Source: Eukaryota sp. TZLM1-RC
Lineage: Eukaryota; Protista; Metamonada: BaSk clade
Reading direction: 5' to 3'
Length of the DNA: 64,000 nucleotides
Assembly: GCA_040285825.1 (NCBI GenBank)
Contig: JAUPSS010000002.1
Location: 248,001 to 312,000, forward strand
Below are positions 9,910-41,878 of this stretch, piece after piece. How positions within the stretch are numbered: position 1 is the first letter of the stretch; each line of letters starts with the position of its first letter. The translations under genes and the position numbers were made by a program. The notes under the pieces are model-generated. The model made no database searches, had not been told where the DNA came from, and saw only the letters and a list, made by a program, of their open reading frames with translations.

Positions 9910-9911
9910 TC

Positions 9912-10540: not shown

Positions 10541-10599
10541 ATACTCTATAAATTTTTTATTCAAATTTTTTTATTTACTAATTTATTTCAACGAGAAAC

Positions 10600-13238: not shown

Positions 13239-13319
13239 CTGCAATTTTTAAGTGCTTTGGTGTTCTGAGAAAGTATTATATAAAAGTAAAAGGAAGTAAA
13301 GTAGTAAAAGGAAAAAACA

Positions 13320-13760: not shown

Positions 13761-14874
13761 TGTTGTAGTTACTGATAAATAATGTTAGTAGTTATCTCAG
13801 GATTTCACTTGATGACGTGGCACTCGTTGAAGAACGGGTTTCTTTATTAATAAACGTTCTTTTCTCTCTCCTTACTTCTTTGGTATTTCTGCCTAACGGC
13901 ATCAATAATTATTGGCCCTCACTGCAGATGCTTTCTACCCGCGTAGTACTCCCTCTCTTGATTCCATGAAAGTGGATGATGTGCTCTTGTTTTTACAGGA
14001 GTGGAAGGTGTACTCTTCTGTTACACCGAAGAAGGACCTTGTTCCAGCAAGGCTCCCCGTGGACCCCTTCTTGTTGGAATCATTAATTCTCACAAGACCT
14101 GGGGGTCGATTCGTCCGATGAGGTGTTTCTGGATTATCTTAGATCCTCCACTTCATTTTCCTTGTACGAGGAATTCAACTTGGCGATGGCTGAGTTGAAG
14201 GTTGATGTCCGTAAGGGCGACGTTCGTGAACGTATGTCCTGCTACCTGAGACGTTTCCTTCAGGCGAAAAGCAGGGCTTCCGGACTGAAATTGCCTGACT
14301 CAGCCTTCATGCTCCGATTCGCCAAGGGGATTCTTCCAATAGGATAACAGAAATCACTGATTTCTCGCATTAGGGACGAGGTATTCCCCGACTTTTCTAC
14401 ATTGGTAAGTACTGCAGAAGATGAACTCCTTGATTGCTCTCGAGTAACCTCTTGGAACAGACCTTTAAAGACTTTTCATGAAACTACTGACTTTCTGCGC
14501 CAAGCTGGAATGAAATCTCGGTCATCCAACACATCCCGCAATCTGGCTGAAGGAACCTGCTTCAAGTGCCATCAGAAGGGCCATTTGTCTCGCGATTGTC
14601 CCTCTAAAGTAAAGCACGGATTGAATCATCTCCGTGTCTGCAACGACCCACCCCAGAATTTGTCGAATCCCCTCTCCTCATTGTGTTAAGTTATTTTTGA
14701 AACTGTTGAAAGGAAAATGGGAAGAAGTAGTGTTATAGTTACTGATAAATAATGTTAGTAGTTATCTCAGGATTTCACTTGATGACGTGGCACTCGTTGA
14801 AGAACGGGCTTCTTTATTAATAATCGTTCTTTTCTCTCTCCTTACTTCTTTGGTATTTCTGCCTAACGGCATCA
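13761..14874 (+). mobile_element. Gag-only non-autonomous LTR element (LTR family 1), 1114 bp
   Basis: 144-bp LTRs 13761..13904 and 14731..14874 (TG..CA, 3 differences), TSD TAAG, PPT GGGAAGAAGTAG; gag-like frame from ATG 13928 with knuckle CFKCHQKGHLSRDC and one internal TAA; no pol. Confidence 0.93.
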
Positions 14875-15773
14875 TAAGTATATGATCAATTTCCGTGCGG
14901 AATAATTTCAAATACTATATACTACACAGATACTGAGGCCGTGGTTTACAACTCACTGTGGCTTCAGCAATTGTAAACATATTCAAGTAAGCCAACTTAT
15001 TTCTATTGAAAAGCTTTGTTGAGCCTTTGTTAATCAATTTACAACTTTCACTGTAACAAGCTAATAAACCATGACATGTAGTAACTAATTTCTTTTCTCT
15101 TTACAGTGCCTTATTGTCAAAATAATCAATTAAATTAGTTTTAAGGCGGAGATGTCTTGCAAAATCAGAAGAAATCATTTCAAATTTCGAACTATCAAAG
15201 ATGGAAGTCGAAACAATATTTAAAGATAAAAGTATTTCGAATTGAAAATTAGCTGGAAAATACGGGGATTTTGCTCTGAAAAATACAGAACTACAACAAA
15301 GAAAATATCGACACTCCCTATCATTACCAACAAGCAGGTAATAAATTTCAACAATAAATAACCAATTTATTGTAGAAACACGCCAAAAACTACAGCAAAA
15401 CTGACATACAAGAATGGGTGTTCACCCTTTTCATGCCTAAAAAATAAATAAATAAGTTTTTTATAATAAATGCTTCAATCGGTCTTTCTTGTTAAACTAA
15501 TTCCAGACAAAAGTTTAGTTTTAAGTACATTGCATATTGGTTTTTAGTTTTCCATTTTTTCGAAAGAAACACGTAAGAAAAACGTACGGACTTTATTCCG
15601 AAAAATAGAAAAATACAGATTTTTGGAGGCCTTGTAAAATACAAAATTACGAAACATACAAAAAGGCATTGCATCTGTATTTTCCACGTATGCTTTGAAA
15701 CAGAAAATCAGTTTCAATTATCTGAATTTTTTATCCAAATCTGCAAAATCTTGCTAATGAACTTGGTGAAGGA

Positions 15774-16050
15774 ATGGCTGATTTTCCAAATAATACATCT
15801 ATGAATCGAATTTTTAACTACGCAGCCAAACAAATTCCCATTACTTATGGAAATAATCTCAGCAAACACTTTCATGAATATGTTTTGCGCTGGATAAACA
15901 GTATCACCTTGAAGAAGTTCAGACTACAACAAATTCAATAAAATCATTTGAAGAAAGAATTATTGACTAAACTCAACAAAGTCAGAGAAGCCTTTATCGG
16001 TGGAAACTTTGATGAAATTCCTATTAATGATCAGATTGTTTTTCCCTTTC
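15774..16050 (+). pseudogene. Probable Fanzor N-terminal fragment
   Basis: Reads IFNYAAKQIPITYGNNLSKHFHEYVLRWIN, resembling the Y.NN...HF..Y....IN segment of Fanzor1 proteins; stop soon after. Confidence 0.5.
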
Positions 16051-16261
16051 CCCAGTCAGAGTTGAGTTTGAAGTTTTTTGCTCATGTGAAATATTGTTTA
16101 ATACAAACCTTTATTAAGGGTAAAAAAATTTTATTATACTCAATCCGCCAAGCCATTGAATTTCTCTCTCATGCTATATATATTAACAGAACCAATCAAT
16201 CATTTGGTTTCCAAGATGGCAACTGTTTCATTTCATATTTTATTTTATTTATTTATTTTCA

Positions 16262-16975
16262 ATGCGTACATTTCTTTTCGCTTTACTTGTTGCTGTTGCT
16301 CTAGCCACCAGAGGGTGGGATTTGTCCCATTTCCAAGGAGCAGTTTCTGAATCTTCTCTCAAGTGCCTCAAGGATAATGGATATGTATTCGGTATCATTC
16401 TCTCCCAAAAATCTTCTGGTGGAAAGAACACCTACGCTCCTGGCGTTTATCGCAGAGCAAAGAAGGTAGGCATCAGTTATGTCTTGTATTTCGCTCACCG
16501 TTAGAAAACGTTGATTTCTATATATTCCCACATGTTAAGGAAGATGCTGCTGTTCAAGCCCGCCGTCAAGTGCAATGGCTTAAGTCAGAAGGTGTACTCA
16601 CGAACAACATGTTGTGGATCGATATTGAGGCGAAACAACTCTTCCTTCCTACTCCTGCTCAAAATGTTGCTTTCCTGAAGAAGATGATCGCTGAAATTGA
16701 TCGTTTGTACAAAGGTTGTGGCAAAAGCACATGTGTAGGTATTTATGCTAACAAGTTTGTCGTCTATTCCATTACTGACCCGCAGATATCAATGGACAAA
16801 TATTATGGGCAATAACTCTGAATTCAGCAAGTACGCTCTCTGGTATCCTCACTATGACAATAATCCATCCTTTTCTGACTGGGTTCCTTTTGCTGGATGG
16901 AGGTATCCTGCTATCAAACAGTACAAGGGTACTACTGATATCTGTGGTACTCAGATTGATAAGAACTTTTATTAG
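16262..16975 (+). CDS. Secreted GH25-like lysozyme (protist/nematode type); exons 16262-16475, 16505-16754, 16786-16975
   Basis: Signal peptide; GWDLS, NVDFYIFP, LWIDIE, GIY, LWYPHYD, FAGW, IKQY, DKNFY motifs. Removing GT-AG introns 16476..16504 and 16755..16785 joins three ORFs in frame. Confidence 0.92.
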
Positions 16976-17629
16976 AAAGTTTAATTCCCTCGTAGTTTAT
17001 TATTGCTTTGAATAAAGTTCATTGTATACACAATTGTTTGGTTGATTGGTTGATTGGTGTCTAACAAAACTTGTTCATTAAAGAAAAATTGTAGGTTTAA
17101 CCAATCATCAAATTGGAAGATCAATATAGTAGGTAATTGTGATGCCTGTTTAGAGGGTATCGAATATTAGATAGTTTCGTGGATTGATAAAAATTTGGTA
17201 TATTGGGAAAAATAACAATCATAATTGGGAAATACTCTGATATATTCCAAAAACAGAGAGATAGTTTATAATTATTAGTTTTATAGAATAGATTATCGTA
17301 TAATTGTGCCCTTACACTCAAGCCGCAAGATATGAATTTCACTTCGGGAAATCAATCCGTTTACACCTACATTATAGTATGTCTAACCCCCACAGATTAT
17401 CATCAACAACAGATCGTTTTTCACATGGTTTTGTAGCTCCCACACTATGAGACTGTCGTCAGAAAATAAATATAAATTAATCATTTGCAAAAAATTAACA
17501 ATGCAATATTTGAATACAAATTAGATCTCGAATTCAGAGACAAAAAGACAGCGATCACAAAAATAAGTATGATGATAATTGAAACACATTTTATACAGAT
17601 ATGTATTTATCAATAAAACAATAGCCAAA

Positions 17630-18295: not shown

Positions 18296-18689
18296 AAGAG
18301 GCGATCAGAAGATTTTAGTCAAAAAAGTCAATTAGCGAGATTCCATGTGAATAGCGAAAATCTCCTGTCATTCAATTGATGGGTTTTTGAGTAGGTAAAT
18401 GGTTTAGTTAAGGTTTGTTGTTTTGTTTTAAAATGTGTCTGTTTCCAGAATAAATTAGCGAGATAATCTAGTACAATAATTGCTAATATAAGTCTGTTAT
18501 CAATAATTTTGAAATTAGGAGGCCAAGCTGCCCAATGAAAGCAGAGCAGTTGTTCTGCGTAGAGGTCCATGTGAATTAATTGTAAAATATGTAAAATTGA
18601 ATTCTGTATTGAACTGTATTTCAGCAAATGATGATTTGATTAAACCCTAAATAAATATTTCTATTTTGAAAACCGCTGTCCAAATGATG

Positions 18690-19017
18690 TTGATTTACTG
18701 AATTCTGTGAAAAACCTTGACAATGCTCTTGATTGTTTGCCCATGACGTTTGGAGTAAATGCTTCCCAATAATGTACAAAGACTACCACCTAGAACACTA
18801 GACAATTTGAGGTATTGTATTAAAAATTGCACCAATAAATAACAATAATTTTTGAAGGCTTCGATTTTGATGTTCGTCTTGGCTCGGCCAAAAATGATTA
18901 TCCCGCTTTCGCAAATTTTTGTTAGATGCGCAAAAATGTTCTTCTTCGTGTTTAATTCCTCAAATTTCTCAAATTTATGGTGTTCTTTTAGATGATGATA
19001 CGTTTTCTTGTACAATG
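18690..19017 (+). mobile_element. Older RLE family C-like copy, 5' part (continues at 22550..22990)
   Basis: Diverged homologue of 22310..22549; breaks at TGTACAATG. Confidence 0.7.
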
Positions 19018-19018
19018 C

Positions 19019-20108
19019 AAGAAGTAAGGAGAGAGAAAAGAACGATTATTAATAAAGAAGCCCGTTCTTCAACGAGTGCCACGTCATCAAGTGAAATCCT
19101 GAGATAACTACTAACATTATTTATCAGTAACTATAACACTACTTCTTCCCATTTTCCTTTCAACAGTTTCAAAAATAACTTAACACAATGAGGAGAGGGG
19201 ATTCGACAAATTCTGGGGTGGGTCGTTGCAGACACGGAGATGATTCAATCCGTGCTTTACTTTAGAGGGACAATCGCGAGACAAATGGCCCTTCTGATGG
19301 CACTTGAAGCAGGTTCCTTCAGCCAGATTGCGGGATGTGTTGGATGACCGAGATTTCATTCCAGCTTGGCGCAGAAAGTCAGTAGTTTCATGAAAAGTCT
19401 TTAAAGGTCTGTTCCAAGAGGTTACTCGAGAGCAATCAAGGAGTTCATCTTCTGCAGTACTTACCAATGTAGAAAAGTCGGGGAATACCTCGTCCCTAAT
19501 GCGAGAAATCAGTGATTTCTGTTATCCTATTGGAAGAATCCCCTTGGCGAATCGGAGCATGAAGGCTGAGTCAGGCAATTTCAGTCCGGAAGCCCTGCTT
19601 TTCGCCTGAAGGAAACGTCTCAGGTAGCAGGACATACGTTCACGAACGTCGCCCTTACGGACATCAACCTTCAACTCAGCCATCGCCAAGTTGAATTCCT
19701 CGTACAAGGAAAATGAAGTGGAGGATCTAAGATAATCCAGAAACACCTCATCGGACGAATCGACCCCAGGTCTTGTGAGAATTAATGATTCCAACAAGAA
19801 GGGGTCCACGGGGAGCCTTGCTGGAACAAGGTCCTTCTTCGGTGTAACAGAAGAGTACACCTTCCACTCCTGTAAAAACAAGAGCACATCATCCACTTTC
19901 ATGGAATCAAGAGAGGGGAGTACTACGCGGGTAGAAAGCATCTGCAGTGAGGGCCAATAATTATTGATGCCGTTAGGCAGAAATACCAAAGAAGTAAGGA
20001 GAGAGAAAAGAACGTTTATTAATAAAGAAACCCGTTCTTCAACGAGTGCCACGTCATCAAGTGAAATCCTGAGATAACTACTAACATTATTTATCAGTAA
20101 CTACAACA
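19019..20108 (-). mobile_element. Duplicate of the gag-only LTR element, 3' LTR truncated
   Basis: 5' LTR 20108..19965; 3' LTR 19138..19019 lacks its last ~24 bp; shares the upstream flank with the 13761 copy, so it is a segmental copy and not a new insertion. Confidence 0.9.
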
Positions 20109-20630
20109 CTTATGGGGAATTTCCTCATGTAATGACCAACTGGTATTGCTTGAATTTGGTTAAACTTTTTCGATTGTCAGTGTGTTATTTATTTGTATAA
20201 GCAACTAATATTCTACAGGAACTATCCAATGGGTGTTAGGTTTGTGGATTTTAGATCGACAAATACAAAAGAAATTGACGGTGGAGCAAACATTTGGTTG
20301 TAAATTGCAATTATTTGGCACTATGATTACTTTTATCAAGAGAAAATACTTATTGAGCATGCACACTTAATTAAAATGAATTCATAATTAATGGGACGAA
20401 TATCATTGAACCAAGATTTCCTCTACAAAATCTTGATCTGCTTGCTGTCGAGCTAAAGATTCTCTTATTCGATTGAAAAACCGAGGTAATCTATTAATAA
20501 TGGCAAATTGAATTCGAGAACACCATAAAAAAATATGAAATCTTTTGATTGTTTTTTCCTTTTACTACTTTACTTCCTTTTACTTTTATATAATACTTTC
20601 TCAGAACACCAAAGCACTTAAAAATTGCAG

Positions 20631-20702
20631 TCTCTCATAGTGTAATGGCTAGCACGCCAGACTTTGAATCTGGCAATCTGAGTTTGATTCTCAGTGAGAG
20701 AA
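20631..20702 (+). tRNA. tRNA-Gln(TTG) duplicate, possible pseudogene
   Basis: Same as 13167..13238 except T-loop TTCGA>TTTGA (C56/B-box change). Confidence 0.75.
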
Positions 20703-22549
20703 GATTTTTGGCTGAAATTTGCTTCCTAAAATGAAACGAATTGATCAAGCACAATCATTATGATCCTTTAGTAGTCAAAATGAATAAGTTTCCAAAATCT
20801 AAACGAAGAAAAACTGTGAAATTCAATGGTTTTGCCATTTCTCTGAATGGACGATTGGGACCTGAGGCATCCTTGTTTCGGATGAATTTAATAATTTCAT
20901 CATTAAAAAACACCCTTCATTTAGGTTAAAATTCTGGACCAATCGATTTGTCTTCAGCTTATACAAAGGTCTTGGTAAAATGGTTGAGGTTGTGGAACTT
21001 GCTCTTGCTCAACACGTGTTTCACAAAGTATGTGAAGATTACTCTCATTTGAGGAAGTAATTTGGTGATGTTAAAATTGTTTAATTTTTCTGGTTAAGAA
21101 ATAGGCGCCCCACAATTCAGAAAAAAATAAAAAAAAACAATTTAGCAAACCTGGTAGTTAGTGAATGTGTACCCATAACATTGCTATGATATTACCCAAT
21201 CTAGGAAGACACGAAATATGTGTAATATCATAATTACTGTTGTGGTGCTCTTGGTATGCCGTAGTCCTCCTAATGCACTTCAAGACATCACTTTTTTACT
21301 AATGTTTAAAATCAGTTTGATGTTTGAAATTTATCATTTGGAGGGCCACAAAGTAATTATTTCAAGGACAGGTGGTTAGATGATGAACAGGTCATGGATT
21401 CGATCAGAAAATATATCAATCAGTAATCAATTCCACCGTCACAATACAAAATACTTGTGCCCGTCACATCTGCCCCATTATTTTTCAGAAGAGATGTTGA
21501 AAATTTTTCAACATTTGATCAAATCCTGTAATGAAGGAGACACTTTGATTCTTTTACCCTTTAATGATGCATTGATTCTTTCAGACCTGCATTTTTTGTC
21601 CAACAATTCACTATTGGTTAACTTCGGGTTCTTGTTGTCTTTGGATCAAGTCCAGCACAAGAGAAGTTTTTCTTTATGATTCGTTTCGATGAAAAATTAA
21701 ATTCATGGTGCATTTTCAGTTACATTTACTAGTTCTGTCCCTATTTTATTTAAAATAAGCTCAACTTTGCATCATTCACCTGTAATGTCAAATTTATGAT
21801 TTTACAAGGATGTAAGGTTATTGATGAAACATCTGTTGTGGGAAAGGAGTATCCTCTATTATTTTTTATTTTGAATAATACTAATAATTTATTTTAAAAT
21901 TTATTTATTAGGAGGAGAAGTACATCAAGAAGTCAAAATTCCCCATTAAATTGATTACTCATTGAACTTGGGTAATAATGATCACACAACCAATTTTGTA
22001 GCCAGATTGGAAGCAAATTTCAACCCAGTTCAATTTCACAAGATATAGACTTGACATATTTATGGAAGTTAATTTGATTGATGTCAATCCTGAACTAATT
22101 CGAAGTCTGTGTTGTCATCATCTAATTTTGGTGGTATTTCAAATCTTCAATTCTTTGTCAAGCGTCTTTTCTTGATAAACGAAACAAATTTGTAAACTCT
22201 TTTTAAATGAAGTTGATTTACTAAATTATGTAAGTAATAACTATTCAAGAGATTTTGACATTACTCATGATTATTTGCCCCTGACATTTGGCGTAAATGT
22301 CTTCCCAATAATGTACAGAAACTACCACCTAGAACGCTAGACAATTTGAGGTATTGTGTTAAAAATTGCACCAATAAATAACAATAATTTTTGAAGGCTT
22401 GGATTTTAATGTTCGTCTTGGCCAAAAATGATAAACCCCCAGTCGCAAATTTTTTGTTAGATGCCCAGAACAGTTCTCCTTCGTGTATACTTACTCAAAT
22501 TCCTCAAATCTGTGATCTTTTAGATGATGATACGTTTTCTTGTACAATG

Positions 22550-22990
22550 TGCCTTCGATGTTTCATTTGGCCCGACAACGTGCCTCATAATTTGATTTGC
22601 AAATGTGGATCAAAAATTTCTCCAAATCATCTGTTTAATTGTAAACACTTTATTACTATCCGATCAAGGGTCCATGATGCAGTAAGGGAGCAACTCTATT
22701 ATATGTCAAAGTCTCACTGAATTGTCCCCTATTTAGAACCCATACTCTGTCGTTTGGTTGATGAAGATATTTTGAATTCTTTTGGTCGAAATAGAGGTGA
22801 TTTAATGCTTGAAGGACTTGAAGGGACGACATTTATCACTGATGTGTGTAATGATTCTTTTATACCATTAGCTCAGTCAAAATACAAGAATCCGCTGCCT
22901 GTTGACGAAAACACTAAAATTGATAAATTTAATGCAAAGTTGCTATTCAAATCAATTTCGTTACAGATGTTGAATATGATAATTTATTGA
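22550..22990 (+). mobile_element. Older RLE family C-like copy, 3' part
   Basis: CKCG..HLFNCKH..RVHDAVRE, then RNRGDLMLE..ITDV..KIDKFN. Confidence 0.8.
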
Positions 22991-23038
22991 ATTTGCACAC
23001 TTGATTAAATTAAATCATAACTAATGGGACGACTATCA

Positions 23039-23490: not shown

Positions 23491-24032
23491 TTACAGATGT
23501 CGAATCCATCCAATTCCTGGTATTTTGAAGACGTTTCTTTTGAACAACTGAGGATTCGATTAAATACAATACCCCCTTAAAAAAGTTTTTGTTCACTTGA
23601 TTGATCAAGCACAATGGTCATAAACAAGGTAGTCATTTATGCGAAGTCACAAATCAAATGTTTCAAAAAATATACTTGATAAGATCTGAGAACCAGGACA
23701 TTGTCCTTGAAAGAATTAATGTCAGGGAACATTAATTAATTTATCACATTTGAGCTTTATGTAGATACATTACTAGTGAGTCCCTTTATATAGATTGACA
23801 TAAAATAAAATTTTCTTTAACTGTACCCCTTTACACACATATACAACCACACCTGACATGCCTTCCAGCAACATTAATTTATATGACACATCCAATTTCT
23901 TGATTGATATGGATTGATTGGTACCTAATACATTGTTGTAGGAATGACAATTGATGCGTTTTTGGAGTTCACAAACTGCCGAATTAAGGTAATTGTACTT
24001 TTTACAGTGGACATTGTTTCATTACCTGAACT

Positions 24033-25533
24033 TGTTGGCGCCCTAAGGCTTATATGTTATGATTAGAAAATAAATCAACTTTTCCTCATTCACTTTTCCT
24101 CATTATCTTTATCTCAACCACTTTTGCAACCTAAGGCAACAATAATTATTGGCCATTTAGGTTATAGGTATACCACTTTGTTATAACACAGCTTTTCTAC
24201 AGAGGATATCTTCAGCAGATATCATGTCAGTCCTTTTCAGCCAAAACACTGACACCGTTAAAACTAACATGCAGGAACATAACAGGTATGCAATTAGCAT
24301 ACAAACAGTAGTAGTAGGAGAAGTACTAGAGACTAGTAAAGTCGAGGACTCGGGATCGAGACCACCCTCCGCCCCTCCTCAAAGAAAAACGATGGAAACA
24401 GGCACGGAACCACCTCCTGCCTCTTCCAAATCAAAATAATGGAAACATGCACGAAACCACCTCCCGCCTTCCAAATCCAACCTAATGCCACAAAAGGTTT
24501 CAGGAACGGGACTACACCCCTCCTCACCAAAAAGGCAAATGTTGGTTCAAGTCCTGAAACTTCGACAGTCTACCAAGGATATGAAAAACTTCAGTCCATT
24601 TTAGACGAACTGGATGACGAAGAGAAAGAACTTCGCCAACAAAACGTGAAGGATGCGGAGGATCACCTCGAACCTACAGATCACTGTTTGTTTGAGCAGC
24701 TCCCTCCTTCATGGAAGCAAATTCCAAAGACAGTAAGATGGCTCCAGTGATGGATTCTACAAACTCCTCACAAGGACACGAAGCTTTACCTCGAATCAAT
24801 TGACTTTTATCCATTCGAGCAGCTCCCTTCCTTACGGAGCCAAACACGAGAAAAGTCGACCAAATACGAGGTTACGAGTAGAAACTCCACCTCCACTATT
24901 ATTGTACTACAATGCAAAGATACGGTCCTTGCTCATCTGATATTTTTAGTCGTAAAGCCCGTACTTTAACCACAAAAGACGCCACCTTCAGGTCTCTAAG
25001 GTTTGTTACTTTGTTTACTGTTGTTGTTAATCCAACATAAACCCTGCATAATCATCAACGAATCCATTCTTCGATTCCATGATACCTTTACTAAACGACA
25101 CCACCACGTTTCTCGTTTACGAAAAAGGGAAGAAGCAGAGCATCTTTATGTAGCGACTAAAACATACACAACAAAGTATTCAAACACACAGATCTTGGAA
25201 CGAGCCCCTTTTCAGTTATTGCTTACTACTTTATACTAACATTGTTCTGGGAGAGCCATAGTACATCAATTGTCGATCTTAAAAATGTGAATCCCAATCA
25301 CTACAAAGATAATTGTAAACAATAGCAAACATTAGAATTTAGTATTTAGTTCTTAGTATTTATAGTTATTTAGTTATTTGTTATAGTTTTGTTTCATATT
25401 CATATAAGCTGATTTATTTTGAAAAAGGGAAGAAGCAGTGTTGGCGCCCTAAAGCTTATATGTTATGATTAGAAAATAAATCAACTTTTCCTCATTATCT
25501 TTATCTCAACCACTTTTGCAACCTAAGGCAACA
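24033..25533 (+). mobile_element. Non-autonomous LTR element (LTR family 2), 1501 bp
   Basis: LTRs 24033..24141 and 25439..25533 (TGTTG..CAACA; the 5' copy has a 14-bp tandem duplication), TSD AACT, PPT GAAAAAGGGAAGAAGCAG; only broken ORFs inside. Confidence 0.92.
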
Positions 25534-26715
25534 AACTGGCATTACCCCTTTTTAAGCTGTGTTTGTCAACTTGTGTCATTGTGAGCTGACTGTGATTTCC
25601 CGTTCAAGAAAGTCAGATACAGAATCTCCTGAATGTAGATACTTCCTCCACAAATATAGTCAAAGTTGGCATGTCATACTACCTTGTACTTATTGAATCG
25701 GCATGTTATTACAGCAAAACAAAAACACAAAGCTATAAGTGCTACTTTCAGAGAGTAGTAGACAATAAATATTGACAAAATAGTGTTGCAACATAATATT
25801 ATCGTGTGAAATTAAATTCTGTTTTGATCATCACAACTGAAAAATAATAATTTCCAAGTAAAAAGTATTTCCCTTCAGGCTTGGTTGAATAGTACTTCGC
25901 ACTTTCTTTTTCCTCATACAAATTTTATTCAAACAAAATTATAAAAAAACTAAAAATAAATCTCCTCATACTCCACATCTACTAAAGAAAACTTACCTAC
26001 AGCTTTTTCTTCATAAAATTTTCCTAGTAATAACAAAGAGCTAGAATATATGTCACCAACAGAATTTCTGTCAAATTCATCAGCCAAATTTGAAAGCAAA
26101 GGTTCTAAAAAATCACACAGATTCATCTTTCACCAGACAAAGTGACTAGAAAATGGTGTATGTGAGAATGATTGCAAACATCATTAATCGCTATTTATCA
26201 CATATGTACCTTGAAAATTTGGTTTATGTACTGATAGATTCATTTGAATATTGCAAATTACCAATAAAGATTCCGTTTTTGATGACTGTATTTGTTCAAA
26301 GTCCGCGCAACTCACCTTACGTCTTGCTCTGAATTGTTGAAAATTGATAACTCAAGGTTCAACATTGAATTATGCTGTCAGTAATACAGTTTTTGATTAG
26401 GCAGGAAACTCTTGTGTCAAAGAATTTTACACCAACCAAACAATTAATTAAAAATGAAACATCAAGTAATGTTTTGACAGGATTTTCGAGGTACTGTGTA
26501 TTCAATTTTTTCAATTTTTGCATCCTATAGAAATGTTAAATGAATCACTTTACTAAAAAAAATAAAACCTGAGAACTTGTCATTGGTTGAGTTCATGAGA
26601 GAAAAACTAAGATGCTGACTGACAATTAAAGCTCAACACCAGCGACAAATGAGTAAGCAGTGGAGGAAATTAAGATTAAAACAACTAAAACACAAAACAG
26701 AGACACAATAAACGA

Positions 26716-28181: not shown

Positions 28182-28184
28182 AAC

Positions 28185-30735: not shown

Positions 30736-33700
30736 CGATGCTGTAGGGTTAGACATTACAGAATATGTTGTACTATGGACATTTAGTCTAGTATAGACTT
30801 CACTAGTGACGGCCTTTATAAGGGCCAATGAAATTTAATAAATATCTTTATCTTTGATCTCTATTCTGTACAATGTCTAACCATACAGCATCATTAATTA
30901 ATGGCTCCGGCCAGGACATTAACGGTAATCCTCCATCTACGGAGAGTAATCCTTCTTTCGAGAAGAGTAATCCTTCCTTCGGGAAGAGTAATCCTCCTAA
31001 GTAGAGTGAGATTTCCGCTGAGAAGAACCTTGCCTCTCAGAAAGAGAAGTCACCTCCCCAATAAGGAGAGTGAACTTCGCGCTGAGGAGAGCCCTACCTC
31101 TCAGATAGGAAATCACCTCCCCAATAAGGAGAGTGTTAATCACGTTGTTGATGTGACAGAACTGTACACATACCCTAACAACTCCTCGGAGCACCTTCCT
31201 TGTAGGAAGAGTTTTCTCACTCCGAACGAGCAACGGAGATTCAAAGCGTTTGCTATAAGCAACAATTCTAACGCTTGTACAGAAGGTGAAGGATGCGAAG
31301 GTGAGCAAAGGTCTACGACTAGCTCTTCACGTAAAACTCCCTTTTCACCCATTTCTGACATCAGCTCAAGTGAGAAACCACAAGGTGATTTCAGAGGATC
31401 TCATAATCAGGACAACAGCAGAAGATGGGATGAGAGCGATGATGAACCACCTCATACACCCAATCCTTCTAATCCAACTCCAAGTTTTCCATCTACGGAA
31501 AAGACTTCTCAAGGTGTTTACCGAAGGAAACTAGCAATGGCAGTTGAGGCTGTAACTAGAGATTTCCTATTGGATCTCATCGCCAATCCTCCTAAAGATG
31601 TAATAGATTGGAGTGATGACGAATTATTAAAAATGGCTGAGAATGAGTCAGAACGTCTTTCGGGAGACGTAGACCCAGCCGAATATGAGAAGGTCAGATG
31701 TGACTATTTAGCGAAACGTTGGCCTTTTCTTTTTGGGGAATTTCACGGCAAAACACTTGACGATGTCGTCTACGAGAGTTATGATCAGAGTCCAAATCTT
31801 TTAAAAAGATTGCATGATTTTACCGATTCGGCAGTTTTGTGTGGGATGAGTGCAGTCGAGGATTGCTATTTTAGTGCTCCTCGTTCAAAGTATCAAGCTG
31901 CTACTCCCAGACCTGCCAAATAGTATAGAAATGCGATTGATGACCACAAAATATATTTCAGTGAAAATAAAGATGCTTACGACAGGTTATTTTGGATAGC
32001 TTAAATGTATCCTCATAATGAACAGGGTAGAAACCTTAGAGGCGTCGTAAGGCATTTCCTGGTGGAGAACGTACACCCAAAAAATTCCATTGCGGACATC
32101 GTACTTATGCTTGGGGCAGATTCGATGAATCTCGAGGCGACACCCTTCAATTTCATGCCAAAGAGTCCTACATTAGAAAAATAGGCACCAGGGTAATCGA
32201 ATTGAAAGAGCAACGTGTTGGCCATAACAAGTTAAAATTAGTTCATCCTGATGCATGGATGGCAAAACTAAAGGCATGGGTTGATAGCTGGCCCGACCAA
32301 AATGTTTTTGAGATCGTCTTAATAAAAAGCAGTTGCCTTCCATATGATCATAAATTAGCAGGGATCCCTAGAGGATCTAAAGATGCACCAGATAAGGGTG
32401 GATTTAAGGCCACCAGCCCAGACTGTACCTGTGCAGGAGGAACCTCCTAAGACAAGATTTATCATAAAGTTGGGCGAAAAATTGCCTTCAGAAGAGAGGA
32501 ATATGAACTCATTTAGTACACCTTCTGTAGGGCCTCTGGCATCTAGGAGAGCTTCTTGTGAAGCAACTCCTACACAAGCATCTGTCATAAAACTATTTAT
32601 ACCCACGCAACCCCATAGGAACGAATGCTCCTAGAGATTCTCTCGTCGACACCCTCGGTCTTTATAGAACTGTTGTAACAGACGAGGAGAAATTGAGAAA
32701 AAGAATAGACGACAAACTCAGATGTCTAGTTAAGCAAAATGAAGCGTTTGACGCCAAGAAGATCTTCGACTTCGTTCTTAACTTTGGCAATTGGGCTAAA
32801 ACGGTTAGGGATCGCAATGGACCCACCAGAGCATTTACGATGATCACCAAACCGTCAAAAATCAACTGGACTTCTGATCATGACGAGGCTTTTGGTAAGA
32901 TTATAAATCTTTTAAAACAAATATCCCTCTTGAATTGCCCTCAGAAGACAAGCATATTTTAATTAGTGCTGACGCGTCCGATGTGGCTGTAGGTGGAGTA
33001 ATATGGCAAGAAGCTAACCCACCTAAAGATCCTACGACACCGCTAATTAAGAGAAAGGTTGTACCTATTGCCTTCTTTAGCAGATTATTATCAACTTCAC
33101 AAAAGAATTAGTCTGTACTTCAGAAAGAGTTGTATGCAATTTTACTAATTCTCACTGACGGAGTTGCTTCACAAGAAGCTCTCCTAGATGCCAGAGGCCC
33201 TACAGAAGGTGTACTAAATAAGTTCATATTCCTCTCTTCTGAAGGCAATGTTTCGCCCAACTTTATGATAAATCTTGTCTTAGGAGGTTCCTCCTGCACA
33301 GGTACAGTCTGGGCTGGTGGCCTTAAATCCACCCAATCTGGTACAACTTTAGATCCTCTAGGGACCTCTGCGAATTTATGATCATATGGAAGGCAACTGC
33401 TCTTTATTAAGACATTCTCAAAAACATTTTGGTCGGGCCAGCTATCAACCCCTGCCTTAAGTTTTGCCATCCATGCATCAGGATATACTAATTTTAACTT
33501 GTTAGGGCCAACACGTTGCTCTTTCGATTCAATTACCCTGGTGCCTATTTCTCTAATGTAGGACTTTTTGGCATGAAATTGAAGGGTGTCACCTCGAGAT
33601 TCATCGAATCTGCCCCCAAGCATAAGGCAGATGTCCGCAATGGAATCTTTTGGGTGTACGTTCTCCACTAGGAAATGCATCACGACGCCTCTAAGGTTTC

Positions 33701-34976
33701 TACCCTGTTGATTATGAGAATGAATTTTAGCTATCCAAAATAGTCTGTCGTAAGCCTCTTGATTTCCACTGAAATATATTTTGTGGTCATCAATCGCATC
33801 CCTATGCCATTTGGCAGGCCTGGGAATAGCAGCTTGATACTTTGAACGAGGAGCGCTAAAATAGCAATCCTCGACTGCACTCATCCCACACGACACTGCC
33901 GAATCGGTAAAATCATGCAATCTTTTTAAAAGATTTGGACTCTGATCATAACTCTCGTAGACGACATCGTCAAGTGTTTTGCCGTGAAATTCCCCAAAAA
34001 GAAAAGGCCAACGTTTCGCTAAATAGTCACATCTGACCTTCTCACATTCGGCTGGGTCTACGTCTCCCAAGAGGCGTTCTGACTCATTCTCAGCCATTTT
34101 TAGTAATTCATCATCACTCCAATTCATTAAGTCATCGAGATGATTGGCGATGAGATCCAATAGATAATCTCTAGTTACAGCATCAACTGCCTTTGCTAGT
34201 TTCCTTCGGTAAGGACCTTGAGAAGTCCTTTCCGTAGATGGAAAACTTGGAGTTGGAGTAGAAGGATTGGGAGTATGAGGAGGTTCATCATTGCTCTCAT
34301 CCCCTCTTCTGCTGTTATCCTGATTATGAGTTCCTCTAAAATTACTTTGTGGTTCCTCACTCGAGGTGGTGTCAGAAGTAGGTGAGGAGGGAGTTTTACG
34401 TGAAGAGCTAGTCTTAGACTGTTGCTCGTCTTCACCTCCTTCACCTTCTGTACAAGCGTTAGAATTGTTAGTTATAGAAAACACTTTGAATCTCTGTTGC
34501 TTGCTCGGAGTAAGAAAACTCTTCCTACAAGGAACGAGCTCCGAGGAGTTGTTAGGGTATGTGTACAGTTCTGTCACATCAACAACGTGATTACCACTCT
34601 CCTTATTGGGGAGGTGACCTCCTTTCTGAGAGGTTATGCTCTTCTCAGCGGGAGGTTCACTCTCCTTATTGGGGAGGTGACTTCCTTTATGAGAGGCGAG
34701 GCTCTTCTGAGCGGGAAGTTCACTCTCCTGAGGAGGATTACTCTTCCCAAAGGAAGGATTACTCTTCTCGAAAGAAGGATTACTCTCCGTAGATGGAGGA
34801 TTACTCTCCTTAGATGGAGAATTACCGTTAATGTCCTGGCCGGAGCCATTAATTAATGATGCTGTATGGTTAGACATTACAGAATAGAGATAAAGATATT
34901 TATTTAAATTTCACTGGCCCTTATAAAGGCTGAAGTATGTGAAGTATGTACTAGACTAATTGTCCACAGTAGAACA
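30736..34976 (-). mobile_element. LTR family 4 element (outer, minus strand), internally deleted
   Basis: 5' LTR 34976..34857; gag-like ORF from ATG 34877; last 30 bp of the 3' LTR survive at 30736..30765; TSD CTTA at 30732..30735 and 34977..34980. Confidence 0.85.
30766..33159 (+). mobile_element. LTR family 4 element (inner, plus strand) inserted in the outer element's 3' LTR; truncated in RNase H
   Basis: LTR 30766..30893; decayed gag-like ORF; pol fragment ISADASDVAVGGVIW..PIAFFSRLL..QKELYAI ends at an abrupt junction near 33159. Confidence 0.85.
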
Positions 34977-36011
34977 CTTAGGACTTTTCCTGTACGCTTT
35001 TCACGTGGTTTTCTACTCTTTTTTGACCCTTCTTTACGTTATATCTGCAATTGATTCTCTTAAATCAATTGTTGGCCTCGCCCTAAAAGCCACCACTCTC
35101 TTCCTATATGTCCATTCTTCACCATCGTCAGTTTCTTCACAATCCCGCTTTTCTCTCTTTTCAGACGTTGCCAAAATGGTTGATAAAATGGATTTCTTCC
35201 ATTTTTTTTTAAAAAAAATTTCTTCCATTTACATCATATTATTATTCAACCAAACAGACCACCCCGTAAAACTTTTAGTTTCAAATAAACAGTATTATTT
35301 CGGGAATCAACATTGATAAAGGTGATTTCAACCCGAAATTGCATGCAGCACCACCTTATGTTTGTTACATTTTTTTGATAGTTCCAAAACAATACTTAAG
35401 TAAATTAAACACAATCAAAACTCATGGAGAGAAACATGCAGACAAATATTAAAATATCAACAACTCTGCTATAAAACTGCTTTTACTAAATCTTCTATTT
35501 TGTGTCAATCAACATTTTTGGGTGGATGCAACAATTTCATTTATGAATTTTCTTTTAGATTTCCTGAAGATTCTCATGTGTTAGTTCCCAGTTGCAGTCC
35601 ATATTTGAATGAGTTATCTTGTGAACATGAAAGATTGCCACCACAAATTTGGACCAAATATTTTCCCAATCAATTCAAGAAATTCCAAACCGATCTCTTT
35701 TTAATTTGTAGTTTTTCTGTGAAAAGCTTTAACAAAAATTGTGAAAGATTTTAAAAAGTTTGGATTTTGATGTTACACTTGGCTTGGCCAAGAAAAAGAA
35801 TCCCGCTTTTGCAAAACTTTTACAAGATATGTGCGATAGTACTTCTTCTGCCTTAGTAACAACTGATGGTCTTGGCTGTTGGTTATTGTCTGACATACAA
35901 TGTAGAGTAACAGAAGTGTAATTTATTACGAAGAAGAATTGTATTCTCTCTTCTTAAGCTAACAGGCGGAATACTAATAACTAAACTATTAACTATAAAT
36001 ACTATTCAAGA

Positions 36012-39000
36012 CTAACACTGCCTTTTCCTCTCTTTTGAGCGACGAGCCCTGGAAGCTCTAGTCACAGGAGGTGAACTAAAAGAATTATTACGCTTCTTGG
36101 GAGGAGCGGATTTAGTACGGCGACGTGCTTGTGAAGTCTTGATAAAGTCATTATACGCGGCAGTATTTTGGACTGTAGACACATGCTCAGTGGTGATCTC
36201 TTTTCCTGGCCATAGCACTTGGCAAAAGTCACCTTCCTTACTGAGCACTTTTTCAATGATGTGTTCTTCGACATCACCTGCAGCGACCCAGGAGTGGAAC
36301 TCATCGTTGGTGGGCAAGCTGGAGTGCCAGGGAGCTAAGTGTTTGACGCTAGCTTGGACAATCGTTCCTGTGCAGAGATTCTTAATATTCACAGACGAAT
36401 TGGATACGATTTCAGTAATTAGGAAGGGTCCTAAATAGTCTCCATGAAGCTTAGCGGAAGAGCCAGATGCTCTCAATACCAATTGACCAACTTCAAAAGG
36501 GTTTGGAGTTGACGATCTAGCTAGCTTGGAAGCTTTGGAAGCTTGATGGTGTGCTGCCTTTTCCTGTTTCTCTTTCAATCTTCGAAATTTAGATTCAATT
36601 TCTTGAATAAAAGATGACTCAGACGTCGAGCTTTCAATGATTTCTAGAATTTTGCCAGGGTCTGATCTGGGAGACACATCTGAGCCAAAGATCACTTGGT
36701 ATGGGGTGTGGTTGGTTATTGAGCTCTTGGAAGAGTTGATCAATAATTGCACATAAGGCAAGTATTCAGACCACACATCGTAGGCATTGAAGTCTACGAG
36801 CAATTTCCGTAGGTTTTGCAGGATGTCTCTGTGTCGGCGCTCTACCAGGCTGTTGGACGGAGAAAACCTAGGTATTGACTTTGACACCTCTATACCCAAA
36901 AATTTGCTTAATTCGTCAAAGACAGCCTTGGAAAATTCGGGTCCATTATCGCTGTGGATTTGAAATGGAATACCAAAGATGGCACAGACTTTCCAAATTA
37001 ATGCATCTGCAGTAAGATTGGCATTTATCTCTTTTAAAGGCACGATGATCGTGAACCTAGAGAAGCTGTCAATAAATACGAGGATGTATTTGTAGCCTTC
37101 TTGATCTTCTGGAAGAGGACCAATAACGTCGGCGTTGACGCGAGCAAAGGGTCTGTCAGCCCACAATGAACCGGTTGGGGGAACATGCAGTTTGGGAACT
37201 GGCTTAGTTTTCTGACAGGAGGGGCATTCTTGCACGTGCTTATTCATGTCGGTGAGCATGTTTGGCCACCAATAATCGCTGTTCCTGAGCTTGTTCAGGC
37301 TTTCAGCTTTGCTTGGATGACCTCCTTGCAGAAGTCCATGCAACAAGTTAAGGGTGTCCTCAATGAGTGATTTGGGAATCACTATCTTGTTGTCGTGAGT
37401 CATATATAAATCAAGATGATTGTTATGAACACAGTTGTTGAAAGAGGGGTCTTTGGAAGCTATGGCAAGCTTCTGTTCGTACCTAATCCTACAGAGCCAT
37501 GGCTCGAAAATAGGCAGGTCGTTGGAACATCGTTCTCTGATGACCATGATACGTTAGAAGTTGTTTAAGTCTTCGATGTAGTATCTTTCATTTTCTGTTC
37601 CATCAATTTTATCATTGTAAAATATTGGATGAAAATTTGGAGGCATTTGATGGGACAAATGATTGATCTCTTGATGGTCTATAGGCGGAACTATTCGAGA
37701 CAACATATCAGCCCAGAAGTTATCTTCCCCTTTGGTATGTACCAAATCAAAGCAGAATTCAGAGAATATGGGTAACCATCTTGTTACAATTCTGTTCTTC
37801 TCAGGAGCCGTGAACATGTAGGTAAGGTTTTGATGGTCTGTGAATATAACCAGTTTCCTTCCTTTCAAGTAGTTTTCAAAACCACTTTGAGTTAACATGA
37901 GTAGGATAGCATAGAGTTCCTTTTGGTTTGTCGGCCAGTTCTTTTGCGAGTTGGTTAACAACCGGCTGAAGAAGCTGATAGGCCTACATTTCCTGTTGAT
38001 CAGGGGGGTACCGGGGTCGTCGACTTGTTCGATTTGTTCCCATATGACGCCGCCTACAGCTATGTCGGACGCATCGCAACTAATTAAAATTTGGTTTTCC
38101 AGCGGAGGTAAGCTGAGCGGCATGTGCTTCGCTATCAGTTGTTTGATTTTTTCAAGGAGTCCGTCGTGCATGTCGGTCCATTGAAGGCGTTGCGCGCGGG
38201 GTTTGGGTTTAACTTTGGAGTTATTTCCATCCTTCTTAGTCAATCTGATGATAGGAGCGATGAGCTCAGATACCTGAGGAAGCCATTCTCTAATGAAGTT
38301 GACTGATCCTACGAGGCTGCGGACGTCTTTGATTGTCTTTGGTCTAGGTAGATTCAACAAAGATTCAACGCGAGTGGGATCGATAGTCCGTTGTTTGTTT
38401 TGGAAAACACTGCCCAGTATCTTGATTGGGTGTCTGGAAGACACGAAATGGCACTTTGGAAGTCCCAAGGAAACTCTTTTGTATCTGGCTTGATCAAGGA
38501 CGCGACGGAGGCGTTCAATGAATTCGTCAAAGGTTGAACCTATGATTATGATGTCATCTATGTAAATGAAGACACCGTCTCCAGAGAAGATGTCAGCCAT
38601 GACGTTTTGGAAAACGGTTGGGACGTTCTTTAGGCCAAAAGCTGCACGTTTGAACATGATGCTTTTGCCGGGAATGCTCAGGGCTGTTTTCTGTCAGTCC
38701 CTTTCAGCAATCTTGAGTTGCCAAAAGGCTTTGGGGAGGTCAAGGGTGCCTATGTAGTTCGCTTGGGAGAGAAATACCAGCACATCGGAGATCCTTGGAA
38801 GGTTGGGCTCAACAGGAATGGTGTTGGCGTTGACTCCGTCCTTGCCACTATAGTCACCGGTAAGGCGGGGCTTACGGTGATCTGGGTAGACCACTAGACA
38901 GACAGGGGAGCTGAACTCATGGTTCGATGGGACAGCAAATCCTGAGTCTACGAGTTCGTCGAAAATTTGGTTAGCGACCTCTAGCCTGGCTGGATTCAGG

Positions 39001-40217
39001 GTCCTGGGGGGTCTTCTAACTCTGACGTCTTCGTTGTAGAAGTTGATTTCCATGAAAGGGTAATCAATACCTTCAGCATGAGGCTTGAGGGTAAATACGT
39101 CTTCGAACTCTTTCAAAGTTTGAAGTAGGGACTTCTTGAAATGGTCGTTGTCGAGGTTGATGGTACAACCAGATGAGTTGATGTGATCCAATCAACGTGT
39201 GGAAACGTTGACGACTTCTGAAGCTTGTGATATTCGATTGTCGAATTCGGCTTCAGGTAATAGTAATGTTCGACAGGCGTCGTCCATTCTAATATAAATG
39301 CCCTTGTTGTTCATCAGCCCAAGGTGGCTCAACAAGTCAGCACCAATGAGAATGGTCTCATGTCCAGGAACGATGCTGAACTTGTGTTTCACGTGTACAA
39401 TCTGGGTAACGCTACCTAGTCTAATGCTAAGGGTTCCAGAAGCAGTACCAAGGGACTGTGAGGTAGTTCCATCAGCAATCTTGTATGAGATGGTTTCGTT
39501 GGAACGTGCCATGTTACAATTACTGATGACGTCTTCCGTGACTACTGAGCATGTTGCACCAGAGTCGATTATGCCTTTAACTTCGACATTGTTGATCAAG
39601 AAGTTTAATTGTAGGCAGTTGTGATTCATATATTGTACCATAAAAATTGTGTCAGAATCATGTCCATTTAGGTCGGCTTGTTCTGAGAAGAAGTTAGCCT
39701 GACTGTTGGGTATCTTGGTAGGTTCCAAGTTTGCAAGCGGATTGATAAGAGAATCTTTCCATGCTGAACTTTCTGTATGTGGTTGTGTTGTTGTTGTAGG
39801 GGGTATGGTTTCTAAAGTACATAAATAGTGACGGGAACGTTTATTGTAAGAAGAGCCTCTGCCTCTGCCGCGAGTACCTCTTCGACTACGGAAACCAGAA
39901 CCTCTAGAACTTCTACCTCGAGCTTGTTGTTGAGCTTGTTGCTCTCTCCATTTCTTGCTCCTTTGGCAGTCTTCACTGGGGCACCTTTCGGACGGATGGC
40001 CCTTTTGCTTACAGAAGTTGCATTGGACATCAGCGGCCTGGGAAGACGATTGTGGTAGGCTTCCCCCTCTCTTACTATGTTTGAGGTTGAGCAGAGGAAG
40101 ATGGAGCTTCACTCTGTTGAGGTTGAGGTGACTCTTGAACATCTTCAAATTGGGCTGGAACCTGATGAGAAGATACTGCTGGTTGTACCAAGCGAGTCTT
40201 TTCGATCCTGCCTTCAA
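36012..40217 (-). pseudogene. pol: gag C-terminus/pol polyprotein with three in-frame stops
   Basis: Four ORFs in one frame: protease IIDSGA, RT LDLPKAFWQ and YIDD, RNase H CDAS, integrase H..H..CPSC/ADVIGP/SDNG/VER, GPF motif, chromodomain-like tail. Confidence 0.93.
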
Positions 40218-40984
40218 CCATTACCCATTTCAGCATTCTGGATTCTACGCAACCAGGGAATACTGTAACTTGCTGGAGGGCTCTTTGTAGATTACCAGTT
40301 CTTCTATGGTCGGGACCACAATATGATGCTATATGGTCTGGACGTCTGTCGTAAAGAAAGAGTCTTTCACCATATGTGGTTTCGGTAAACCACCACCCTG
40401 TTCTGTAATCTCTGTCGATAAGATATATCGAGAGATGCATTGTACCCAGGGCTGAACCTAGGGTATGGACAAGGGTTATGAACATTTAAGAAGAGGTTGT
40501 CTTCATCTCCAGCGAAGCGTCTGAAAACTCCTTCTCGAGTAGTTCTCATGAACCTAACTCCGGGTCTTGGGTCGTAAGTAGGTTCTGGGTCATTCCTAGA
40601 GGTTTCTGGGGTGATCCTTTTGTCGGTAAGAAATGGACCTATTCTGGGAGAGATCCATAATCTCAAGTCGTTCTGGACTTTGGGGCCGTAGAAAGGAGGA
40701 CGTTTGTTGCTCATCTCCGTGGGAGGGATGGCTTCTGGGTCCTCTGGAATGACTTGTGTATCCCTATATCTAGCATAAGGATTGTGCTGGCGGGAAGCAC
40801 CATGATGAATACTCGAGCTAGCGTAGGAGCTAGTTTGAGAAGGGGTGTGTTTAGCAAGTGTAGAGGATGTTCCTCTTCTAGCCTGTAACTCTCTTTCCAG
40901 TCTGTTCTTGAGTTTCCAGATTCGATCTTCATGGAAGTAACGTTCTAAATATTTTTTAGAAACCTCACCAGTTTCTCTATCAAT

Positions 40985-41878
40985 TTAAGGAACATGTTCC
41001 GTGGGAAGAACCGGAGGTTGAGCTGTGTGAGAAAATTCCCTGGGAGGTTCCTCATAGTCAACCAGATCTGAAAATAATAGTTCATACTTCTTCCTTTGCT
41101 CTTCGGAAAGATGCGAAGGAAAATTTGGTGTGCTAGGAGTGGAATCTCTAGCCTGGGGAGGGGAAACAGACAGATTGTTAACTCCTCTTACTGTTGATGT
41201 AGTAAGAGGAGATCCTGAAGTTGGGACAGCAGGATTTTGAATAGTTCTCCTAACAGTTGGAACTGCAGGGAGAAGCTGTTGAGAGTGAGAGGGTGGAACC
41301 TCAGAACTGGATGGAAGGGATGAAGATGGTACTTCAATGGCCTTCTTAGAGGAGGAAGAGGGTTGGTCTTCCAATCCTTCTTTTGCAGTGAGAGAAGGTT
41401 GAACAGTCTCTCTGCTCTGAATAGAAGGTGAAGGTGGTACTTCAGAACTTCTTCCAGGGAGGGGAGAAGGTGGGACTTCAGATGCCCCCAATTGCGAAGG
41501 GGGAAGAGGGGGAAGAGGAGCAACGGAATCCTCTACGTCCTCGTCGTCGTAGGAGACCAACGAAGGACTTCTTCCTTCCGAAGGAACGGAATCCTTGTGA
41601 GGGTTGTCTCCTTCCACAGGAACAGAATCCTGAGGAGGGGAGCTTCCTTCCATGGGAACGGAATCCTCTGGAAGGGAATTGTCTTCCTTTGGGGTGGAAC
41701 CCTCAGAAAGAGTTGCTTCAGGAAGCGCAGAAGCTTCAACCGAAGAAGGAGGCACGGAGGCAGGGTCTGTGGTTAGTGGTGAGGAAGAGGGACCAGTCTC
41801 TTCCTCAAGGATCCTACATTGAGCCGGGGACGACCCAATACGTATTGATGGTCTTGGCTGTTGGTTATTGTCTGACAT
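40985..41878 (-). CDS. N-terminal low-complexity part of the element's ORF1 (gag), broken downstream
   Basis: ATG lies inside the 5' LTR; Pro/Ser/Glu-rich with short tandem repeats. Confidence 0.65.
   Translation of the reverse strand: MSDNNQQPRPSIRIGSSPAQCRILEEETGPSSSPLTTDPASVPPSSVEASALPEATLSEGSTPKEDNSLPEDSVPMEGSSPPQDSVPVEGDNPHKDSVPSEGRSPSLVSYDDEDVEDSVAPLPPLPPSQLGASEVPPSPLPGRSSEVPPSPSIQSRETVQPSLTAKEGLEDQPSSSSKKAIEVPSSSLPSSSEVPPSHSQQLLPAVPTVRRTIQNPAVPTSGSPLTTSTVRGVNNLSVSPPQARDSTPSTPNFPSHLSEEQRKKYELLFSDLVDYEEPPREFSHTAQPPVLPTEHVP

Follow-up and report, generated by a model that had tools for sequence, protein, structure and literature searches.

Positions 13,761-41,878 of a 64-kb window (the whole stretch of DNA analyzed here, 37% GC) from the free-living protist "Eukaryota sp. 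TZLM1-RC" (Skoliomonas) hold a nest of compact long terminal repeat (LTR) elements. Judging from their sequences, these are Ty3/gypsy-order (Metaviridae) LTR retrotransposons of Skoliomonas and short non-autonomous derivatives. Four families (F1-F4) are present, and each carries a perfect 12-nt palindrome at the junction of 5′ LTR and leader, the position of the primer-binding site (PBS). Together with relatives from the two sister isolates GEM-RC1 and TZLM3-RCL, they show that the palindrome is universal in this lineage, that it is locked to the LTR end and that its self-complementarity is kept by paired substitutions.

In families 1-3, two direct LTRs with TG...CA termini are accompanied by 4-bp target-site duplications (TSDs) and a polypurine tract (PPT); the LTR ends are therefore fixed independently of the palindrome. 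In all three, the terminal CA of the 5′ LTR forms bases 1 and 2 of the perfect 12-nt palindrome. For family 4, which lacks a 3′ LTR in the window, the boundary is based on two diverged inverted copies and on the alignment with the other families, which places the palindrome in the same register. The motifs and the opening of the palindrome by the terminal CA had been reported in a first-pass annotation of this DNA, and all of them were found at their positions. Additionally, a 2-nt bulge and an outer stem accompany the palindrome in the four window families. The features are listed by family, with positions counted in the window.

13761..13904, plus strand: family 1 5′ LTR, 144 nt, TGTTG...GGCATCA; left TSD TAAG at 13757-13760; 141/144 identical to the 3′ LTR
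13903..13914, plus strand: family 1 junction palindrome CAATAATTATTG; outer stem GGC 13898-13900 / GCC 13915-13917, 2-nt bulge AT
14708..14730, plus strand: family 1 PPT, ends in ...GAAG-TAG and abuts the 3′ LTR
14731..14874, plus strand: family 1 3′ LTR; right TSD TAAG at 14875-14878
19955..19966, minus strand: mirror image of the family 1 palindrome, within an inverted duplication (12418-14850 versus 19019-21451, 100% identical)
24033..24141, plus strand: family 2 5′ LTR, 109 nt, TGTTGG...GGCAACA; left TSD AACT at 24029-24032
24140..24151, plus strand: family 2 junction palindrome CAATAATTATTG; outer stem GGC/GCC, extended by AACCTAA 24128-24134 with TTAGGTT 24157-24163
25416-25438, plus strand: family 2 PPT ...GGGAAGAAG-CAG, precedes the 3′ LTR
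25439..25533, plus strand: family 2 3′ LTR, 95 nt, with a single internal deletion; right TSD AACT at 25534-25537
41846..41999, minus strand: family 3 5′ LTR, 154 nt, TGTTAG...GACCATCA; TSD GTTG at 42003-42000
41836..41847, minus strand: family 3 junction palindrome CAATACGTATTG; outer stem GACC 41853-41850 / GGTC 41835-41832
36012..41878, minus strand: family 3 internal region, five open reading frame (ORF) pieces in Ty3/gypsy order, split by stops or frameshifts
40985-41878, minus strand: family 3 gag ORF
39192-40217, minus strand: family 3 ORF with zinc knuckle and protease
38694-39191, minus strand: family 3 ORF piece without a family match
37554-38657, minus strand: family 3 ORF with the C-terminal part of reverse transcriptase (RT) and RNase H
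36012-37547, minus strand: family 3 integrase ORF
36040-36018, minus strand: family 3 PPT ...GGAAAAGG-CAG, precedes the 3′ LTR
35864..36017, minus strand: family 3 3′ LTR, 152/154 identical to the 5′ LTR; TSD GTTG at 35863-35860
30766..30893, plus strand: family 4 LTR, 128 nt, TGTTGT...CAGCATCA
30892..30903, plus strand: family 4 junction palindrome CATTAATTAATG; outer stem AGC 30887-30889 / GCT 30904-30906
34847..34858, minus strand: family 4 palindrome in the other arm of the inverted repeat; LTR at 34976-34857, sharing 109/120 LTR bases with the plus-strand copy

The family 1 and family 2 elements (1.1 kb and approximately 1.5 kb) are non-autonomous. The family 3 element is 6.1 kb long, and Pfam matches on its minus strand give the pol order protease, RT, RNase H, integrase, which is also found in the relatives. 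The palindromes at 19955 and 34847 had been counted as additional copies, a view that could not be maintained. The first adds no evidence because it lies inside the 100% identical inverted duplication of family 1, and the second belongs to the other arm of an inverted repeat with 91-99% identity. The LTRs are also less dissimilar than had been described: the LTR ends of families 1 and 2 are homologous, and the termini TGTT...GCAWCA are common to all four families. The two reverse-complement copies might point to a DIRS-like inverted-repeat element, which we rejected since the elements have direct LTR pairs with TSDs and the copies are segmental duplications.

Two observations concern single families. 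Family 4 consists only of two partial head-to-head copies (30766-32570 and 33160-34976) with arms that are 91-99% identical, and the left flank of its plus-strand LTR is an inverted fragment of the U5 region of the same LTR. This arrangement suggests insertion into a sibling element followed by rearrangement. Within the family 1 LTR, at 13843-13854, there is another perfect 12-nt palindrome, TTTATTAATAAA, which overlaps an AATAAA signal and is mutated in the 3′ LTR.

Palindromes of 12 nt are common in this DNA: 27 were observed in the window, and 20 ± 4.4 are expected from Markov simulations. Only their placement is therefore informative. At a given site such a palindrome is expected by chance with a frequency of about 3e-4, yet it is present at every junction. 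A search with the family 3 integrase piece yielded relatives with 36-66% identity in GEM-RC1 and TZLM3-RCL, and twelve loci (L001-L012) were examined. The resulting sample comprises 16 junctions with 15 distinct sequences; its sources are three isolates of Skoliomonas and a single Logan contig. Every resolvable 5′ junction follows the same rule, with a palindrome that includes the terminal base or bases of the LTR at the PBS position (16/16), so the conservation predicted for further families was found. In F1-F3, L001a, L002, L003a, L003b, L011 and L012a, paired LTRs and TSDs fix where the LTR ends. The usual length of the palindrome is 12 nt (range 12-18; some reach 14 or 18 nt). It begins with the two bases that close the 5′ LTR, and its dyad axis is located 4 nt beyond the LTR end. 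Six 12-nt cores occur, all of the form CA-N-TA-NN-TA-N-TG; they differ in the center and at positions 3/10.

Center AT, positions 3/10 A:T: F1, F2, L002, L003b, L012b
Center CG, positions 3/10 A:T: F3, L001a
Center GC, positions 3/10 A:T: L001b
Center TA, positions 3/10 A:T: L003a
Center AT, positions 3/10 T:A: F4
Center AT, positions 3/10 G:C: L004, L006, L007, L009, L012a

The palindrome of L011, AGTAACGTTACT, begins at the last A of the LTR, which places its dyad at +5. This element has 92-nt TG...CA LTRs that are 100% identical, a TSD and an intact ORF of 1,429 amino acids. The trait is thus present in elements that look active and not in relics alone. L012a likewise has LTRs with 99% identity, a TSD and TG...CA ends. 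At the other extreme, the palindrome is kept in non-autonomous elements of 0.9-1.5 kb that have little besides LTRs, PPT and palindrome.

One locus, L008, was left out of the count, as its LTR boundary was placed without a second LTR on the contig. It stems from a Logan contig of SRR12623521 (47% GC) and is a chromodomain-bearing relative with 43% identity in RT/RNase H. At 198-207 it shows AGTGATCACT directly after ...AGCACA, resembling the 10-nt palindrome of the fungal GalEa elements considered below. Pfam Chromo matches were obtained for the L008 and L009 proteins, and none for the family 3 integrase piece or P0221.

For the covariation analysis, the 16 junctions were anchored on the LTR end (alignment A1) and pairs were counted over the 15 distinct sequences. 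Each of the six inner pairs is present in 100% of them. Two positions covary: columns 15/22 are AU in nine sequences, GC in five and UA in one, and columns 18/19 are AU in 11, CG in two, GC in one and UA in one. One-sided changes in the inner pairs were not found among the 15 sequences. The covariation score is 0.400, compared with 0.123 ± 0.029 for shuffled alignments (0/500 reach the score) and at most 0.116 for controls with slid partners, which substantiates the covariation claimed earlier for the palindrome. The outer stem covaries as well (GGC/GCC, GACC/GGTC, AGC/GCT, GATC/GATC, GGT/ACC). In 3-5 of the 15 sequences, for example L001a and L009, this stem does not form; the outer stem described for the window families thus does not extend to the whole sample.

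A covariance model built from A1 found no match better than E~1 in 13 unrelated metagenome gypsy loci (22-35% identical). In the Skoliomonas loci it detected two more junction copies, L007:5721 and L001:748, each with one uncompensated mismatch, which is consistent with decay after insertion.

The pairs in columns 18/19 bear on the form in which the palindrome acts. The central dinucleotide is always self-complementary, and all four types (AT, CG, GC, TA) were seen. These two columns covary although they are adjacent and unable to pair in a hairpin, which favors an intermolecular duplex. Predicted hairpins are weak (-0.8 to -6.5 kcal/mol), and a homodimer exceeds two hairpins in stability by 12-17 kcal/mol; for shuffled sequences the difference is 5-7 ± 3. 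As proposed before, pairing of two genomic RNAs is thus favored over a hairpin, as far as can be judged from sequence and predicted energies.

To our knowledge, the start of reverse transcription in LTR retroelements is considered settled: the primer is the 3′ end of a tRNA, a tRNA fragment, or the element's own RNA in fold-back self-priming of the Tf1 type. Neither a tRNA-type nor a Tf1-type site could be recognized here. None of the 16 junctions has TGG within 0-5 nt of the 5′ LTR end, in agreement with the first-pass annotation. In the four window families a TGG follows 7-8 nt downstream, at the palindrome's 3′ edge; it is lost in L001a, L003b, L009, L011 and L012a. An offset tRNA PBS at this TGG was rejected, since the TGG is missing in these five families and no canonical T-stem is seen in the putative tRNA 3′ ends. 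The sequences following the palindrome are unrelated between families and share nothing. An Rfam scan revealed two tRNA-Gln genes and nothing else, and ARAGORN found no tRNA genes in L001-L012. The tRNA-Gln of the window was rejected as primer, as its matches are at most 7 nt long and out of register. The pipeline was also applied to control gypsy elements; the few whose LTR pairs could be resolved have ordinary TGG sites a few nucleotides after the LTR.

Self-priming of the Tf1 type was likewise rejected. Exact complements between LTR and leader are 6-7 nt long, which is within the shuffle null, and thermodynamic LTR-leader duplexes (duplexfold) have z values of -2.3 to +1.9 at scattered LTR positions, with no Tf1-type site among them. 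The LTRs therefore contain no complement of a PBS, as had been noted. A mimic of an LTR-LTR circle junction (CA, spacer, TG) was discarded too: the bases after the TG are unlike the LTR start except in L003b, and the extra bases on the PPT side (YAG) differ from the right half of the palindrome. Logan contigs from DNA runs matched family 3 in a fragmentary way, and among the matches listed, neither variants nor joints fall on the palindrome.

Relative to the LTR end, the gag ATG is 19-33 nt upstream in one group of families; in another it is 18-27 nt downstream. Gag starts (ATGTCT...) inside U5 in F3 (41878), F4 (30873), L001, L002, L003a, L004 and L006, where the palindrome is translated; in L009, L011 and L012a the ATG follows the palindrome. 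Since the palindrome is locked to the LTR end on whichever side the gag ATG lies, it is not a translation signal.

In the retroviral mechanism, the outer edge of U5 is set by the base that RT copies first. Because the start defines the LTR boundary, minus-strand synthesis should begin within a few nucleotides of the terminal CA. The 3′ end of the primer would then have to anneal inside the palindrome, which would make the palindrome the functional equivalent of a PBS. We tentatively propose, with a confidence a little short of even, that this self-complementary cis element at the PBS position serves dimer-based self-priming. The palindromes of two co-packaged genomic RNAs would form a 12-bp duplex, often with three to four outer pairs in addition. 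One strand of the duplex would be cut at or before palindrome position 10, because the integrated LTR must end in CA and this CA has to be copied into DNA. The new 3′-OH would prime minus-strand synthesis through U5 and the repeat region (R) of the partner RNA. The likeliest nuclease would be the element's own RNase H, given the analogy with Tf1. The palindrome might also supply the homology for the second strand transfer.

The PPT side offers a parallel. In every full element a polypurine run is followed by YAG or YAA directly before the TG of the LTR (YAA once); the other strand reads CA followed by YTR, similar to the CA followed by NTA on the U5 side. Both cDNA ends may thus carry three extra bases, N-T-R, that are removed by integrase, and the primer 3′ end would then lie one base past the dyad.

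Several points weigh against dimer-based priming. We infer every mechanistic step beyond a self-complementary substitute for the PBS, and strand cleavage and priming from the cut end are pure inference. The argument from the central pair comprises only about 3-4 independent changes with a chance p of roughly 0.005-0.02 and is suggestive, not conclusive. The geometry is not rigid, as the outermost pair of L011 is a C/T mismatch and the outer stem is missing in L001a and L009. The inner 12 nt are strictly Watson-Crick in the 15 sequences, without any G:U, a symmetry that would equally fit a requirement at the DNA level or the copying of one half from the other in each cycle. Furthermore, the comparison with host tRNAs covers tRNA-Gln only.

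It seems unlikely to us that the palindrome is a dimerization or packaging signal only, comparable to a dimer linkage site, and that reverse transcription is primed by something not yet recognized. Dimerization palindromes near the PBS are well known from retroviruses and Ty1, and both covariation and dimer energetics fit dimerization as such, being silent on priming. However, no other candidate primer site is visible, given the unrelated sequences behind the palindrome, the non-conserved TGG and the lack of an LTR complement. The fixed register with the LTR end, whatever the position of gag, also fits a site at which cDNA starts, whereas a packaging signal needs no such register.

That the functional form is an intramolecular hairpin of U5 end and leader, as proposed for GalEa, recognized by RT either for self-priming in cis once the RNA has been cut 3′ of the hairpin or for another kind of initiation, appears quite unlikely. 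RNAfold predicts the hairpin in every family, and the covarying outer stem with its one-sided 2-nt bulge suits a hairpin as well as a dimer. Yet the central four nucleotides would be unpaired in these weak hairpins, although the central dinucleotide is self-complementary in all four types. In addition, a cut 3′ of the hairpin would strip the PBS homology from that RNA, so that a second RNA would still be needed.

We regard it as quite unlikely, although the possibility carries some weight, that the symmetry is a DNA-level feature or is mechanically regenerated in each cycle (by a fold-back cDNA end, second strand transfer or half-copying), with the covariation a by-product of replication. Besides the strict Watson-Crick pairing, the LTR-related junctions L001a and L001b could be cited for this explanation, as they differ by a CG to GC change without a wobble intermediate, and so could the single uncompensated mismatches in the defective copies L007:5721 and L001:748. 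The swap is no proof of templated symmetry, however, because the LTRs of L001a and L001b are approximately 15% diverged and two separate substitutions are possible. Moreover, the outer stem covaries too, and being interrupted by the bulge it is not made by simple copying. That the palindrome is incidental and the primer comes from the host, as a tRNA, a fragment of one or some further cellular RNA, is highly improbable: the TGG at the palindrome edge of the window families and the narrow tRNA comparison leave some room for it, but the TGG is lost elsewhere, tRNA-Gln matches poorly, and the six different palindromes would require six host RNAs, each of which must itself contain a perfect palindrome.

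Taken together, tRNA independence and intermolecular pairing are favored. The closest likeness is found in the fungal GalEa elements (Ty1/copia), which have no PBS and carry a Conserved Hairpin Site directly after a 5′ LTR ending in CA (Donnart et al., 2017, PMC5445492). This site consists of the A at the LTR end followed by CTGATCAGT or CTAATTAGT; it is palindromic only together with this last LTR base, its variants occur mainly at two symmetric positions, and its authors fitted it to no priming model (PMC5445492). A second, complementary box, CHSeq2, often lies 6-41 bp downstream and has a fixed A/A mismatch; according to the supplement it is missing in the most abundant GalEa families, which leaves the palindrome as the common core (PMC5445492). 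Like the Skoliomonas elements, GalEa shows neither a tRNA PBS nor a Tf1-type complement, has TGT...CA termini and a palindrome at the LTR end, and its dyad lies 4 nt past the LTR end (among the Skoliomonas elements L011, at +5, is the exception). The two differ in that GalEa is copia-order and the Skoliomonas elements are gypsy-order, with integrase after RT/RNase H. Furthermore, the GalEa palindrome is 10 nt long, whereas that of Skoliomonas has 12-18 nt and includes both bases of the CA. A CHSeq2-like box downstream of the palindrome was not detected; the best matches of 5-7/10 are within the null in all 16 junctions.

In Tf1, the PBS base-pairs with the 11 nt at the start of its own transcript. 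Tf1 and the other Tf1/sushi chromoviruses (such as Tf2, Maggy and Skippy) use their own RNA as primer, which is set free when an RNA:RNA duplex at the PBS is cut in an RNase H-dependent manner (PMC5006619, PMC6934838). They resemble the Skoliomonas elements in being gypsy-order and in having no tRNA primer. The Tf1 site complements the transcript's own 5′ end, whereas the Skoliomonas site is self-complementary and no LTR segment complements the leader. Retroviruses and Ty1 have short self-complementary sequences in the 5′ leader (dimerization initiation site, DIS, or PAL) through which two genomic RNAs pair. These palindromes exist in addition to a tRNA PBS and usually lie in a hairpin loop. 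In contrast, the Skoliomonas palindrome occupies the PBS position, overlaps U5 and is itself the stem or dyad, which is not the kissing-loop arrangement of a DIS. Skipper of Dictyostelium, a gypsy element of the chromovirus type, has lost the TGG-type PBS and has no Tf1-type complement, and its priming was left unresolved (PMC5006619). It has a degenerate polypyrimidine tract after the LTR in place of the palindrome seen in Skoliomonas. Looser hairpins have been described for bivalve TRIMs (miniature retrotransposons with terminal repeats; PMC6934838).

The literature searched contained no description of Skoliomonas retrotransposons or of dimer-based priming. With GalEa, a closely analogous palindrome has nevertheless been published (PMC5445492), so the earlier statement that there is no prior description does not stand. 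The observation itself is confirmed and generalized; its kind was already known from GalEa, where it is unexplained, and the gypsy-order case is new. A whole lineage, active-looking copies included, has neither a tRNA-type nor a Tf1-type site and carries a self-complementary site instead. The same +4 dyad in two different superfamilies suggests a further, unrecognized mode of priming, which, if true, would tie genome dimerization directly to initiation. One might go further and consider reciprocal dimer priming a general route to tRNA independence, separately evolved in metamonad gypsy and fungal copia elements: two RNAs would pair around a dyad located 4 nt past the U5 end, cleavage close to this dyad would let one RNA serve as primer on its partner, and the palindrome would be re-created symmetrically in each cycle. 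We consider this generalization rather doubtful. In practice, such elements will be missed or mis-scored by LTR annotation software that demands a PBS of the tRNA type.

Several repeats surround the elements. The two arms of the inverted duplication (12418-14850 and 19019-21451) are separated by a 4.2-kb spacer; they hold the whole family 1 element and a tRNA-Gln(UUG) gene (13167-13238 and 20631-20702). Their 100% identity points to either a very recent duplication or an artifact of assembly. A direct duplication (10001-12717 and 43248-45959) consists of blocks with 91-100% identity that lie 33.2 kb apart, and parts of it are found inverted at 21121-22575. A separate dispersed repeat contains CAATAATTTTTG, a palindrome with one mismatch, in a conserved AT-rich context (18831-18868 and 58483-58520, as well as 6127-6164 of L005). 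The junction model gives it a weak score, and a relation to the junction palindromes is improbable. L005 also contains a tandem array at 8007-13304 with a period of 1,648 bp, four 152-nt LTRs and three integrase ORFs (integrase-only fragments), which looks like the product of unequal recombination or of a non-standard amplification of an element fragment.

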